A stretch of 64,000 bases of DNA, taken from contig JAWQFM010000003.1 of NCBI GenBank assembly GCA_033442325.1, forward strand, positions 1,961,490 to 2,025,489. The letters are read 5' to 3'. The notes below the pieces were generated by a model that ran no database searches, had not been told where the DNA came from, and saw only the letters and a list, made by a program, of their open reading frames with translations. This DNA is from Salpingoeca rosetta. Taxonomy: Eukaryota > Protista > Choanoflagellata. The stretch's first letter is position 1, and every line of letters starts with the position of its first letter. The translations under genes and the position numbers were made by a program. Shown here in pieces: positions 36,251 to 46,283 of this stretch.

Positions 36251-38771
36251 TTACCTGCGGCTCCTGCTGTTGCTGCGGGCACGCGTGCGCTTCGACCGCT
36301 TCGCACTTGGCTCCTCGTCAGACACATCATCCTTGTTGGAGGTGTTCTTCTTGCCCTTTGAGCGCTGGCGCGTGGCGGGCGGAGAGAACATGTCGTGCTC
36401 AGCAGGTGCAGGCGTGGTCTCGCGATCGCCCTGCGTCTGTCCCTTGTTTGCGCGCCCACGGGTTGCCTTGGTGCGTGTCTCCTCTTCCTCTTGCTCTTCC
36501 CCCTCTTGTTCTTGCTCTTGCTCTTGCTCTTGCTCTTCCTCTTGCTCTTGCTCTTCCTCTTCATTGTCGCTGTTGTGGTCGACGATGGCCAGCAAGCGCT
36601 CCTGCAACTCCGCCTTGCGCCCGCGCACTTCTGCACCAACCTCGCTCAGCACGGCACGAAGCTCCGCCACCTTCATGGCCATGATCTGCTCGCGTGACAG
36701 CTCAAGGTCAACGTCCTCTTCTTCCTCTTCTTCCTCTTCCTCCTCTTCCTCCTTTTCCTCCTCATCATCATCACTGCCTTCTGCCTCGGCTTCATCTTCC
36801 TCAACAGCGTTGCCCTGTGAAGTCTCAGCGTCACTGGCCTCGTTTGCCGTTTCCTGGGCTCCAGCTGCATGTTCCTGCTCTTCCTCTGCCTCCTCCTCCT
36901 CCTCCTCTGCGTGCTGTTCGTTCTGATTTGCCTCAGCGCTCGCATCGTTCGCGGCAGAGGCGCGGATGGCATCGAGCAGGCGCTCCTGTAGCTGCTTCTT
37001 GCGGCCAGCAGCAGACACGCCAATCTCAGACAGCGCATGTCGCAGATCGTTCATCTTCATGCTCATCACGTCATCCTCTGTCAGCCCAAGCTTGGACGCC
37101 GCAGTGTCGTTGCCGCCCTCCTCCTCCTCCTCCTCCTCATTGTCTTCCTCCTCCTCTTCCGCATCAGCAGCAACAGCAGCAGCAGCATCGTCATGTCCTT
37201 CATCTGCTGATTCGTCCTCGTCCTCCTCCTCTTGCATGGCAGCGCCAGTATCCTTGTCCTCCTGCTCCTGTCCAACCTCCTGCTCCTCATCTTCCTCGTA
37301 TTCCTCATCTTCCTCCTCTTCCTCCTCTTCCTCGGTGCGCTCAGGGATGACAGAGAGCTTGCGCTTCTCAAAACTCAGCTTCGGGCCCCGCAACTCGTCC
37401 TCGTCGCGAGGGCTGGGCTCCAGGGCAATCGACAGCCGCGACTGCAGCTCCGCCTTGCGGCCGCTGGTGGACAGCCCGCGTGCCTCCAGCTCGGCCCGCA
37501 GCTCCTTGCACGTCATCGACTTGACGTCCAGGCGACTGGGCTCCGGGTGGCGCGGTGCGAGCTGCTTGCGCTCCATCTTCTTCTGGCTGGACCGCGTCAG
37601 ATACGCGCGCTGCGGTGGCGACGCCGGCTCAGGCGTCCGCATGCCATCCTCTGCTTCATCCTCAGCCTCATCATCACCCGCCTGTTCTGCGTTGGGCTGC
37701 GCCTTGACGGGCATGCTTGGGGCAGACTCCGTGCCTTCCTGTGCCTGTTCATCGTCGTCGTCAGCTTTCGCCTCATCCTGCATTGCTGCGGCCTTGGCAC
37801 CATGCTCGTCATCCTCTGCCTGCTCCCGCATTTGCTCGGCTTCGGCGGCAGTTGGCATGGTTTCCTCGGCGGTGGCTGTTGTCTCCTCGGATGTCTGGTC
37901 ATCGACCTCGGCAGAAGGTGCAGCAGCAGCATCCTGCTCTTGCCCCTCCTCAGCCGTTTCCTCTCCGACTGCGCCCTTGTCCTCGTCGTGCTCTTGTGCC
38001 ACTTGCGCATTGGGCTCTTCCTCAGCAACACCATCACCACCTTCCTCTTCCTCAAGGACTTCTTCCTCTTCCTCCTCATCCTCATCCTCATCCATCTCTT
38101 CATCTTCTTGCTCCTCAGCCTCGTCCTCCTCCATCTCCTCCTCAGCGTCTTCCTCGACTTCCTCGACTTCCTCGACAACCTCCACCACCATTTCATCCTT
38201 ATCCTGCACAGCCTCCTGCTCCTTCTCCTCCTCATCTTCTTGCTTCTCTTGCTCCTCTTCCTTAACCTCTTCCACAACCTTCTCCACAACCTCTTCTTCC
38301 TCGTCGGCAGCTGCTGCCACGGGCTTCAGTGCAACGCCGCGGCGAACAGCCTCCCGTGTGGGCGTGTTCAGGCTCTTCTTGTACAGAGTCTTGAGCGCAA
38401 TCCCTTGCTGCACCTCCCGCCGCACCGGTGACGGCAGCACGTGCTGTGCCTCGTTGGCGTCTTCGCGTGCCTGTGCGACAATCTCCTCCTGCAGGTGTGC
38501 GGGGAGAGCGCGGGCGCGGCTGAGGCGGTAGCGGCGCTCGCGGCGCTTCAGCAGCCGCTGCGCAGCGTTGACGGAGATGGTCACCATCTTTGGGCACTGG
38601 TTCAGGGCCCGGCGGATCGGGTGGCACAGCGAGGGGGCATATGGCACAAAGCGAAGCCCGCGGGGGCGAGAGCGCTTGCGCTTCACATTCGCAGCAGCAG
38701 CCTTTGCAATGGCCAGTGCCATGGCCTGCTGGTCTTCCTCGTCCTCCTCGTCTTGCTCTGCTTCGTCATCC

Positions 38772-38808
<37 letters not shown>

Positions 38809-40104
38809 CTGCCGCCACATTGGCGCTGTTGTCTTCCCCCATGGGCATCGAAACGTCTTCCTGCTCAGCCTCAGCGGCACTCGCATCGCTGCCTTCCTCC
38901 TCGTCCGCAGAATCGTCTTTTCCCTCTTCCTCTTCTTCCTCCACATCTTCGTCATCGTGCATCACAACAGCAACCTCCTCGACTTGTACGGCCTCGGTCA
39001 CTTCCTCATCTTCGTCGTGTTCATCCGCAGGTGTAGCCTTCACCTTCTTCAGAGTCACGCCCTCCTTGATCTGCTCGCGCACAGGCGTGTTGAGTGCCTT
39101 CTTGTACACCTTGTTCAGCTCCTTGCCTTCCTTCAGCTGCTGACGCACGGGTGTCGCAAGGCCCTTTTTGTACACCTTGTTCAGCTCCTTGCCCGCTTTG
39201 ATCTGAGCACGCACGGGTGTTGCCAGGCCTTTCTTGTACACCTTGTTGAGGTTGGCGCCGCCTTGGATTTGCTGGCGGAGAGGGGTCGCGAGTGCCTTCT
39301 TCTTGGCCTGCGTAGTCTCTGTGTCTTGGGTAACAGTCTTCTTCAGAGTCACGCCCTCCTTGATCTGTTCACGCACAGGCGTGTTGAGTGCCTTCTTGTA
39401 CACCTTGTTCAGCTCCTTGCCTTCCTTCAGCTGCTGACGCACGGGTGTCGCAAGGCCCTTCTTGTACACCTTGTGCAGCTCCTTGCCCGCTTTGATCTGG
39501 GCACGGAGAGGCGTCGCGAGTGCCTTCTTCTTGGCCTGCTTGTCCGTGTCTTGGGTAACAGTCTTCTTCAGAGCCACGCCCACCTTGATCTGCTCGCGCA
39601 CAGGCGTGTTGAGTGCCTTCTTGTACACCTTGTTCAGCTCCTTGCCTTCCTTCAGCTGCTGACGCACGGGTGTCGCAAGGCCCTTTTTGTACACCTTGTT
39701 CAGCTCCTTGCCCGCTTTGATCTCCTTGCGAAGCGGCGTCGACGCTGCCTTCTTGTACACCTTGTTAAGGTTGGCGCCGCCTTGGATTTGCTGGCGGAGA
39801 GGAGTGGCAAGCGCCTTCTTCTTGGCCTGCTTGTTCTCCTGCTGCGTGGCTGCAGGCTTTGGGCTGTTGAGGTCAATCAAGTCCTGGTCAGACTCTGTGG
39901 AGGCGTCAAGGTTCAGCTTTGGCGGTGTCTGCTGCATCTTCTTGGGCGTGGTCGCCCTGGACTTCTTCTTGCGCTGCGATGTTGGGCGCGAGCCAACCGT
40001 CTCACCCGCCTCATCCGACTCTGGAATCCTCTACACACCACAACCACGGACCAACATGCATGTAAGTACCGGGTGCATGCACACATGTGGGCGTGTGTGT
40101 GTGT

Positions 40105-40147
<43 letters not shown>

Positions 40148-41823
40148 TGTGTGTGTGTGTGTGTTTGTGTTTGTGTGTGTGTGTGTGTTTGTGTTTGTGT
40201 GTGTGTGTGTGTTTGTGTTTGTGTGTGTGTGTGTGTTTGTTTGTGCGCCGTGTGCGCGAGCAGAGGTGTGCCACCGTCTCAACGTGACACTTCCACGGAC
40301 ACACAAGCAATTGGGGGCAAGCGACGACACCTTGAGGATGGGCACGAGGGCGCTCCTGCGCTTGACAGAGACGGGCCGCGGTGATGCACCACGCTTCAGC
40401 GGCGTGCTGGGCGGCAAGTCCTTGTCGAAGATCTCTGGAGACAGCGGGTCGGAGAACCCCACGCTACGACGACGTGGTGCGAGCGCAGGGGAGGCGCCCG
40501 TGCTGCCCCGCTTGCTGTCATTGGCGGTCGCAGCAGCCGTTGCTGCCTTGTTCTTCTTCTTGAGGGAGCTCTTTGGTAGCTTTGTGGCAGCAGGGGATAC
40601 CGTGTTGCTGGGTGTCTTTGAGCGGGGGCCGCCGGCACCAGCGTTGCGGTCCTGCAGTGGAGTGGAACGGCGTGAGCTCTTCTTGCTTGCAGACGCGGGG
40701 TTGGACTGTTCATGTGGGATGTTGTGCGGTTATGTGTGTGTATGTGTGTGTGTAGGTGGGTGTGTGTGGGCGTGCGCGCAGGGGTGTTGGTGCATTTGGG
40801 CATGTGAACAACGGCAACAAGGGAAATATGAACAACAGCCAGAAGCAAGCATGGTGTGGGTGCTGTGCGTATGTGTGCGCACACATCCCAAAAAAAAAAA
40901 ACACTGCTACAGACAGTGGCACCACGCAAAGCCACAGCTCCAAGCAAGTAACCCAAACGCACACAAACACACGCACACAACACACGCACAGATGCACATA
41001 AACAGACGCACATGCACACACGCGCACACACGCACACACGCACACAAACACATGCAGACACGCGCCGTCACACACGTCAACGCACCTTCTTTGGGGTGGA
41101 GAGGATACGCTCGTTGGGAAAGTGGAAGCGAAAGCGGCGCTCGGCAATGGTGATGACATCGCCGTCCTTGAGCTCCCGTGACTTGTCAACAACAGCGCCG
41201 TTCACCAGCGTCGCATTGTAGCCAGAGTCTGCTGCGATGACAAGCTACAGCAGCAATGAAGGAAACAGTTTGCCACAGGGGGTCCACATGTGAGTTTGGG
41301 TGCGAGAAATGAGGCTGAGGACAGCAAAGGTAGTGGTGGTGGTGCAACAATGTCACGAAGCAGGAACGTGCATGCTGGAGTCAAAGCATGACACTGCGGT
41401 GCCTTGAGCACGGGCGGAGCAAGCGAGCGTACCTTGCCGCTGTCTCCCTTGCGGATGCTGGCGTGGTGCTGTGAGACTTTTGGGTTTTGAATGCGAATGT
41501 CACATTGCAAGTCCCTGCATAACAGTACACGTGTGTGCGTGTGTGTGTGCGTGTGTGTGCGTGTGTGTGTGTGTGCGTGTGTGTGAGTCGACATGCAACG
41601 GAGGAACAATAAGGAACAAGGCACAACTCCTGCACAAGCTATCTGCACGTCGAGCCAGTGTGTGTGTTTTTTTTTGTGTGTGTGTGTGTGAGCACCCTCA
41701 GGCCGCTTAGCAAGTGACAGACCTGCCAAAGGAGCAGGAGTCTTTGGTGATGTTGTAGATGGAGCCATCCTTTCCCGTCTTCTTCTTGATCACCACAAGG
41801 TGACCAACGACGTTGGAAGCCAT
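36251..41823 (-). CDS. Ki-67-like protein (~1498 aa): FHA + PP1-docking motif + tandem 22-aa repeats + acidic region + 3 SAP domains
   Basis: Exons 41723-41823, 41433-41514, 41086-41244, 40331-40705 and 36251-40030 join in frame at GT/AG. FHA: HLVVIKKKTGKDGSIYNITKDSCSFGRDLQCDIRIQNPKVSQHH..NATLVNGAVVDKSRELKDGDVITIAERRFRF. PP1 motif: RRRSVGFSDPLSPEIFDKDLPPSTPLKRGASP. SAP pattern: MxxxELRxxL...G....GRKAELQxRL, three times. Confidence 0.85.
39040..39817 (-). repeat. Coding tandem repeat: 11 units of 66 bp (22 aa), KxLxTP(L/V)RxQIKxGxxL(N/K)KV
   Basis: Read directly from the translation. Two units are extended by a TVTQD..QAKK spacer. Confidence 0.95.
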
Positions 41824-42370: not shown

Positions 42371-42433
<63 letters not shown>

Positions 42434-42518
42434 GCGTGTGCGTGTGTGTGTGTGGTGATGGCTACACGCTCTGCGTCGTGCTGTTTACTGACAAGGAGAC
42501 CAACACACTGTCACGTAG

Positions 42519-46283
<3,765 letters not shown>

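Follow-up and report, generated by a model that had tools for sequence, protein, structure and literature searches.

WH2 motifs consist of a helix that occupies the barbed-end cleft of actin and of an LKKT strand; three leucines are crucial in them, and the asparagine variant LNKT is present in WASP (PMC11589041). As for Ki-67, it was long held to be restricted to vertebrates, and the role of its repeat region is still a question; a preprint of June 2026 (10.64898/2026.06.18.733134) has described homologues from outside the vertebrates, one of them from a choanoflagellate. Features of both systems meet in a gene of the choanoflagellate Salpingoeca rosetta, located in a stretch of 64,000 nucleotides (hereafter the window; positions 1,961,490 to 2,025,489 of contig JAWQFM010000003.1, assembly GCA_033442325.1): its product is Ki-67-like and carries an array of 11 tandem units of 22 amino acids (aa) that resemble WH2 motifs, each with a full consensus site for cyclin-dependent kinases (CDK). 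The gene is a further member of the recently described non-vertebrate Ki-67 homologues, and the CDK-capped WH2-like unit, conserved from choanoflagellates to cnidarians, appears to be undescribed so far; the preprint presents the repeats only in generic terms, does not describe the unit, and the word "actin" is absent from its text. The units are located as follows, with residues numbered along the open reading frame (ORF) of the last exon and A1 denoting the profile built from the units of the family.

36251-39937, minus strand: last-exon ORF of 1228 aa, which holds the array
39041-39817, minus strand: array of 11 tandem 22-aa WH2-like units, ORF residues 41-299
39302-39412, minus strand: unit 7 (LKKTVTQD-type) with its flanks, the peptide modelled with actin, ORF residues 176-212
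38300-38443, minus strand: two diverged distal units (SPVRREVQQGIALKTL / SPVRREVQQGIALKTLYKK, and TPTREAVRRGVALKPV), ORF residues 499-546, with 27.4 and 24.2 bits against A1

Regarding the single motif, the units share with the WH2 motifs of WASP/N-WASP, WIP, MIM, Spire and VopL the core L-x-x-x-I-x-x-G-x-x-L-[KRN]-K-[TV], with the same spacing; they differ from them because they stay under the Pfam cut-off, they have Arg or Lys in place of the second leucine of the helix and [LM]-x-T-P in place of the upstream Arg, and they contain a CDK site in every unit and belong to a nuclear-type protein. As for the tandem WH2 proteins, such as Spire, Cordon-bleu and VopL/VopF, the likeness consists of many units placed head to tail in a disordered region, whereas the number of units (11-36 in this family against 3-4), the period (21-22 aa, versus the 28-39 aa of solved constructs), and the lack of a dimerization or KIND-type module set the present proteins apart. 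With Ki-67 and RepoMan, and with the non-vertebrate Ki-67 homologues (10.64898/2026.06.18.733134), the S. rosetta protein has in common the N-terminal FHA domain, the docking motif for protein phosphatase 1 (PP1; Pfam PP1_bind) and the CDK-rich repeats in a disordered region. Sponge proteins that have these same repeats bear the NCBI label "Ki-67-like"; unlike vertebrate Ki-67, the S. rosetta protein gives no match to the vertebrate repeat model (K167R) at E<=10 in the Pfam scan of the window ORF, is acidic as a whole (isoelectric point, pI, 4.66) and has three C-terminal SAP domains. Finally, two actin-responsive families can be compared by functional analogy only, and one of them is MRTF, a G-actin-sensing cofactor that combines RPEL repeats with a SAP domain. 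The other is Phactr, in which G-actin-binding peptide repeats accompany a PP1-binding motif (Phactr1, PMC7599070); in contrast to both, no RPEL family was among the Pfam matches of the protein at E<=10, and its PP1 dock is of the Ki-67/RepoMan type.

The pattern of the array is K-x-L-x-T-P-[LV]-R-x-Q-[IL]-x-x-G-x-x-L-[NK]-K-[VT]; in every one of the 11 units, T-P-[LV]-R is followed by [IL] at the fourth residue past [LV], by G three residues further and by L-[NKH]-K-[VT] at the end, and the score of each unit against A1 is 30-39 bits. The ending is LNKV in seven units, LKKT in two, and LKKV and LHKV in one each. The units are grouped into three super-repeats of 4, 3 and 4, each closed by a unit of the LKK[TV] type, and the first two super-repeats end with LKKTVTQD followed by a short QAKKK linker; at the DNA level, Tandem Repeats Finder reported a period of 66 bp, with 73-78% matches, and above it one of 225 bp, with 87%. 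An earlier note, made from the letters of this DNA, had described 11 tandem 22-aa units, most of them LNKV, and both the count and the coordinates agree with what was found here. The comparison of codons over 55 unit pairs revealed synonymous differences for the T, P, R and LKK-leucine positions in 39, 34, 30 and 19 pairs, respectively, and 0 non-synonymous ones; therefore, these residues are kept by purifying selection and do not owe their identity to mere recent copying. The two distal units lie 200 residues C-terminal of the array, and they are present in the orthologue from Barroeca as well. When A1 was scanned over the whole genome (55.4 Mb, 68 contigs), its matches were the 13 units of this gene alone; a feature search of the ESM Atlas with the array gave no usable match.

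Beyond S. rosetta, the search of 1.84 billion representative proteins with the array returned 50 matches, 16 of which at E <1e-30, and about 50 protein clusters have the unit, among them Ki-67-like proteins of sponges, cnidarians and choanoflagellates. The matches comprise sponge proteins that NCBI names "proliferation marker protein Ki-67-like", from Corticium candelabrum (E 1.7e-144) and from Oscarella lobularis, and proteins from the sponge Ephydatia muelleri, the cnidarians Hydra vulgaris and Sanderia malayensis, and the choanoflagellates Barroeca monosierra, which has the closest named orthologue, and Mylnosiga fluctuans, along with the EukProt protein P0003 and a JGI FHA protein. Among the 35 members scanned for domains, 25 had PP1_bind, 10 FHA and 4 SAP. 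An iterated hidden Markov model of the unit found 2 to 36 copies per protein, mostly with a period of 21 aa, and the consensus over 448 distinct units was [LM]-x-T-P-[LVI]-[RK]-x-[EQA]-I-x-x-G-x-x-L-[RK]-x-T. In these units, Thr occurs in 98% (with Ser instead in 1%), Pro in 99%, Ile in 95%, Gly in 65% and Leu in 100%; the residue after this Leu is K/R in 87%, and the last position is T in 91% or V in 8%, hence T/V in 99%. The position following [LVI], which corresponds to the slot of the second WH2 leucine, is R in 71%, K in 19% and Q in 8% (K/R 90%), and never Leu, while the residue at -2 from the Thr is Leu or Met in every unit. A Pro is placed between Ile and Leu in 27% of the units, and this suits a helix that gives way to an extended strand better than a single long helix; together with the hydrophobic residues at fixed spacing, the Gly/Pro break argues for a motif that folds on a partner and not merely for compositional disorder. 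Judging from its distribution among the sequences, the unit is an old feature of the Ki-67-like family.

Regarding the kinase site, the earlier note had recognized the CDK consensus T-P-x-R in each unit, and this held both for the array (11 of 11) and for the family, as the frequencies of T, P and of K/R at +3 demonstrate; the S. rosetta protein contains 17 full CDK sites, and 13 of them are inside the units. S/T-P-x-K/R is the optimal CDK site, and Cks1 is docked by phospho-Thr only (PMC4230602). The strong preference for Thr over Ser, along with the Leu or Met at -2, argues that this Thr is a phospho-site and not a helix cap alone. In addition, the +3 basic position of the CDK consensus is provided by the very Arg found in place of the second WH2 leucine, so that one peptide may be kinase site and binding helix at once, and this coincidence would explain why Arg is retained in that slot. 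The presence of a PP1 dock within the same protein makes self-reversal of the phosphorylation plausible.

As for the likeness to WH2, the profile A1, built with 129 units from about 50 proteins, was compared with the 177,635 distinct sequences of the PDB and gave nine matches; the best seven, without exception, are WH2 peptides whose structure was determined in a complex with actin: N-WASP (3m3n_W, E 1.3e-4), Spire (3mn7 and 3ue5), VopL (3m1f), MIM (2d1k), N-WASP (2vcp) and WASP (2a3z). Alignment with hhalign of A1 against A4, the profile of six WH2 motifs from the same genome, had a probability of 71.6% and an E value of 3.5e-5 over 15 columns (lR~eI~~g~~Lr~tk over LLaaI~~g~~LrK), and unit 7, of the LKKTVTQD type, had the WH2 motif of N-WASP as its sole PDB match when searched alone (E 4.8e-5). 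In the family, the first helix position (L/V/I) and the Ile stand at the WH2 spacing, and the LKK[TV]-type strand is found about 6 residues past the Ile, with the frequencies reported above; the near-invariant positions of the unit, namely L/V/I, I, G, L, K/R and T/V, are those at which WH2 motifs contact actin.

The organism has intron-less conventional actin genes, and a complex of its own actin (L001:1492-2619) with ORF residues 176-212 was modelled in three runs, accompanied by three controls; 51 of 78 solved complexes attain the mark set for this test, as do 2 of 108 mismatched pairs. Each of the three runs scored 0.85, versus 0.02 for the best control; the runs shared at least 72% of their contacts, and the pLDDT (predicted local distance difference test) of the partner was at least 66. 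On actin, the interface is made of residues 21-31, 144-149, 167-170 and 338-356, which presumably correspond to the cleft between subdomains 1 and 3, the site of the WH2 helix, and to the surface of subdomain 1 on which WH2 motifs lie. The tightest contacts in the models involve I192, at the centre, with V188 and R189 beside it, and L198 against residues 24 and 26 of actin; R189 packs against actin residues 149, 168 and 169, and T186 is outside the confident contacts. In these models, unit 7 docks confidently in the barbed-end cleft of actin. The earlier note had suggested such a docking as a check of its actin proposal, and had named the lack of a confident docking, along with the lack of G-actin binding or of an effect on polymerization, as what would refute it; with unit 7 scoring 0.85 in the cleft, the objection from docking does not arise.

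WH2-type sequences also exist elsewhere in the genome and in a protein from a metagenome. The motifs of the genome are found at C6:982030-982194 and C13:958180-958257; one is WIP/verprolin-like (GRGALLSAIHKGAKLKKAVTNDRSAP, 47 bits), and a tandem pair with longer linkers occurs in an open frame of 1052 aa. The metagenomic protein, P0049 (L017:5697-8693), has 998 aa and starts in the manner of a signal peptide, and it contains ankyrin repeats along with YRTPLQKEIQAGKQLKPV units, five of them in tandem; it is an unrelated ankyrin-repeat protein that the array matched with an E value of 2e-4 in the search of 1.84 billion proteins, and of 3e-12 with BLASTP. Its five units are over the Pfam WH2 cut-off, with 40.8 bits in total, and its gene is one of six co-directional, tightly packed and intron-free ankyrin-repeat genes on an 89-kb contig. 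P0049 looks like the effector of a bacterial symbiont or pathogen, and its units would be either an actin-targeting WH2 array or a mimic of the Ki-67-type repeat of the host.

The protein in which the array resides is defined by the following features.

41722-41823, 41433-41513, 41086-41244, 40331-40705 and 36251-40030, minus strand: coding sequence of the Ki-67-like gene, 5 exons, 1498 aa, supported by spliced RNA contigs and reads
41086-41823, minus strand: FHA domain over exons 1-3, with PF00498 matches in exon 2 (23.8 bits) and exon 3 (19.7 bits)
40388-40471, minus strand: PP1-docking motif of the Ki-67/RepoMan type (RRSVGFSDPLSPEIFDKDLPPSTPLKRG), PF15276 PP1_bind, E 3.7e-11, 43.5 bits against a cut-off of 27 bits
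38738-39022, minus strand: acidic tract directly after the array, 54 D/E in 95 residues, pI 4.05
37433-37528, minus strand: SAP domain 1, best of the three stretches matched by PF02037 (E 1.4e-30), ORF residues 804-835
36962-37066, minus strand: SAP domain 2, second PF02037 stretch, its core placed by pattern search
36596-36697, minus strand: SAP domain 3, third PF02037 stretch, with HeH and SAP_RNF34 matches at ORF residues 1081-1113

The gene is expressed, and its four introns (40031-40330, 40706-41085, 41245-41432 and 41514-41721) have GT..AG borders on the minus strand (CT..AC on the plus strand) according to the organism's own RNA contigs and raw RNA-seq reads; all of them are upstream of the array, which is itself spanned by reads and contigs, and the reads are strand-biased. 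The assembled coding sequence is in frame and has one stop, which is terminal, and residues 1-382 of the protein have 48% identity with the FHA-bearing orthologue of B. monosierra, P0009. Regarding charge, the array is strongly basic (pI 10.4, with 68 K/R in 267 aa), the N-terminal part and the middle part with the two distal units are basic too, and the C-terminal half, with the three SAP domains, is long and acidic. The FHA, PP1_bind and SAP matches agree with the Ki-67-type context and the PP1 recruitment that the earlier note had assigned to this gene.

On these grounds, the reading tentatively adopted, to which somewhat less than an even chance is given, is that the units bind actin, or an actin-fold protein, and that CDK and PP1 gate this binding. 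The units would be bipartite short linear motifs of the WH2 type, set within a Ki-67-like protein that comprises FHA, PP1 dock, repeats and SAP domains, and two segments of every unit would take part in its folding on the partner. The first would be an amphipathic helix of three turns (T-P-[LV]-R-x-x-I-x-x), capped by Thr-Pro and ending at the Gly or Pro; the second would be an extended and basic L-[KRN]-K-[TV] strand. Monomeric actin, or another protein with the actin fold, is the foremost candidate as partner: [LV] and Ile would enter the barbed end's hydrophobic cleft, and the LKK[TV] strand would run across subdomain 1, as in the solved WH2-actin complexes. The Thr that would cap the helix belongs to the full CDK site [LM]-x-T-P-x-[RK], so phosphorylation of many units by mitotic CDK may change the binding of the partner, and PP1 on the protein's own dock may reverse it at mitotic exit. 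Everything concerning actin is built on sequence likeness and on one model, and it is from these that we infer that the units bind actin at all, in which direction phosphorylation would switch the binding, and what role it may have in the cell.

Several points weigh against this reading, and the first of them concern membership in the WH2 family. The Pfam WH2 model (PF02205), proposed by the earlier note as a check, assigned the window ORF 18.9 bits (E 0.0012), below the cut-off of 23.1 bits and over profile positions 11-25 only; genome-wide, the best unit had 17.1 bits (E 0.39) versus the 26-47 bits of real WH2 motifs, and none of seven orthologues, scanned singly, exceeded the cut-off, with 17.9 bits at most. 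Because of this score, formal membership of the WH2 family is not claimed. Likewise, A1 recovered none of the organism's own WH2 motifs when run over the whole genome, and a unit of the QGGANLNKV type searched alone in the PDB found no WH2, and instead one spurious de novo protein (E 1.4). Hence, the WH2 likeness proposed in the earlier note stands for the family profile (top seven PDB matches, hhalign E value) and for the docking of one unit, and it fails for the Pfam cut-off and for the LNKV-type unit. As for the residues, LKK[TV] is present in three of the 11 units of the array; the second leucine slot is occupied by Arg, Lys or Gln throughout the family, so that the caveat of the earlier note about the Arg in LLxxI proved true well beyond this gene (Arg or Lys in about 90% of the units), and the Arg that WH2 motifs conserve upstream of their helix is missing, with [LM]-x-T-P in its place. 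The period of 21-22 aa is short compared with the 28 and 39 aa of the solved tandem WH2 constructs, therefore neighbouring units may be unable to bind actin simultaneously, a difficulty that extends to nucleation; a stretched-out unit is, by our own estimate, barely long enough for one actin. The accompanying FHA, PP1-docking and SAP features suggest a protein of the nucleus or of chromosomes, and no link between Ki-67 and actin, nor any relevant paper on Ki-67 and WH2, was present in the literature that was searched. Finally, the model was obtained with a single unit, chosen as the most WH2-like one, and its success may reflect a memory of solved WH2-actin complexes, in which case it reports likeness and not binding.

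The explanation that competes best with actin binding is that the units are CDK-switched basic repeats acting on chromatin or RNA, or by charge patterning as proposed for vertebrate Ki-67 (brush, surfactant, phase separation), with a convergent WH2 likeness and with actin as no partner; it is a serious possibility, if still a doubtful one. The succession of a strongly basic array and an acidic block, the concentration of the CDK sites in the units, the SAP DNA-binding domains of this Ki-67-like gene and the WH2 score below the Pfam cut-off are all in line with it, and the preprint on the Ki-67 homologues argues that these proteins keep biophysical features and not sequence (10.64898/2026.06.18.733134). 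However, composition alone gives no reason for an Ile and a Leu that are invariant at a fixed spacing, with a Gly/Pro break between them and a T/V end, from choanoflagellates to sponges and cnidarians; nor does it account for seven top PDB matches that are all WH2, or for a specific docking with clean controls.

A further explanation, considered improbable, is that the units are docking sites for another reader: phospho-Thr ligands of FHA domains, including the protein's own one, which would lead to CDK-dependent self-assembly; sites for processive phosphorylation driven by Cks1; or helices that bind a nuclear actin-related protein. The phospho-acceptor is almost always Thr, and this suits both phospho-readers, as FHA domains read phospho-Thr only and Cks1, as said above, has the same restriction; the protein has an FHA domain of its own, and the Leu or Met that is always at -2 fits the preference of the Cks1 pocket. 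On the other hand, Arg or Lys at +3 is atypical for FHA ligands, and the conserved I-x-x-G-x-x-L-K-x-T, placed 6-15 residues after the Thr, is left unexplained.

Lastly, it is very improbable that the units are degrons of the destruction-box type for the anaphase-promoting complex/cyclosome (R-x-x-[LI]-x-x-x-x-[NE]): RQQIQGGAN and RQQLKEGKE fit R-x-x-[LI]-x(4)-[NE] by eye, but most units of the family have Ile rather than Leu and a variable ninth position, and to our knowledge there is no precedent for 11 to 36 consecutive degrons. Two other short motifs, the MyPhoNE motif of PP1 (RxxQ[VIL][KR]x[YW]) and the PP2A-B56 motif LxxIxE, were ruled out by eye, as their spacing is wrong.

Other features of the locus were noted along with the gene. 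Some read joints, such as 37231/38067 and 36500/38926, could be mistaken for introns; they were rejected because their sides of 20 nt fall in GAG/GAA-rich acidic tracts and carry extra letters, and they were taken as cross-mapping from other transcripts with acidic tracts. At 37283, in an acidic tract, the RNA contigs of one study have an in-frame insertion of 18 nt (TCCTCATCTTCCTCGTAT on the plus strand), which suggests a polymorphism in the length of the Glu/Asp run between strains or cultures. The RNA reads differ from the assembly at single bases as well, namely 36493 G>C, 36538 C>G, 36661 G>A and 40973 G>A, and these could be alleles or strain differences; those at 36493 and 36538 are mixed in frequency within runs and, as they fall in an acidic tract of low complexity, may also stem from cross-mapping. 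Long (GT)n/(CA)n microsatellites occur at 40093-40245, 41531-41585 and 42374-42454, in the introns of the gene and in the region upstream of it, and the intron 40031-40330 is mostly a repeat of this type. The adjoining upstream gene (42570-43766, minus strand) was read by eye as a candidate intron-split chaperonin Cpn60/HSP60.

In conclusion, the repeat region of early-branching Ki-67-like proteins is not a sequence-free disorder, as it consists of a sharply conserved motif of 21-22 aa, in which a full CDK site and a WH2-like pattern for actin binding are superimposed. A more ambitious proposal, which is held to be unlikely, is that the ancestral Ki-67-type proteins of choanoflagellates, sponges and cnidarians were cell-cycle-gated chromosomal actin binders or nucleators: their arrays of 11-36 units would be switched in mitosis by CDK1 at the helix-capping Thr, re-armed at mitotic exit by the PP1 docked on the protein itself, and would couple the chromosome surface to nuclear or perichromosomal actin, and vertebrates would later have swapped this module for the classical Ki-67 repeats. 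If the units do bind actin, they would provide the first direct molecular link between the Ki-67/PP1 machinery of mitotic exit and actin, and they would represent a new, phospho-gated subtype of WH2; if they do not, the unit would still be a conserved motif of the Ki-67 family with a partner worth finding.

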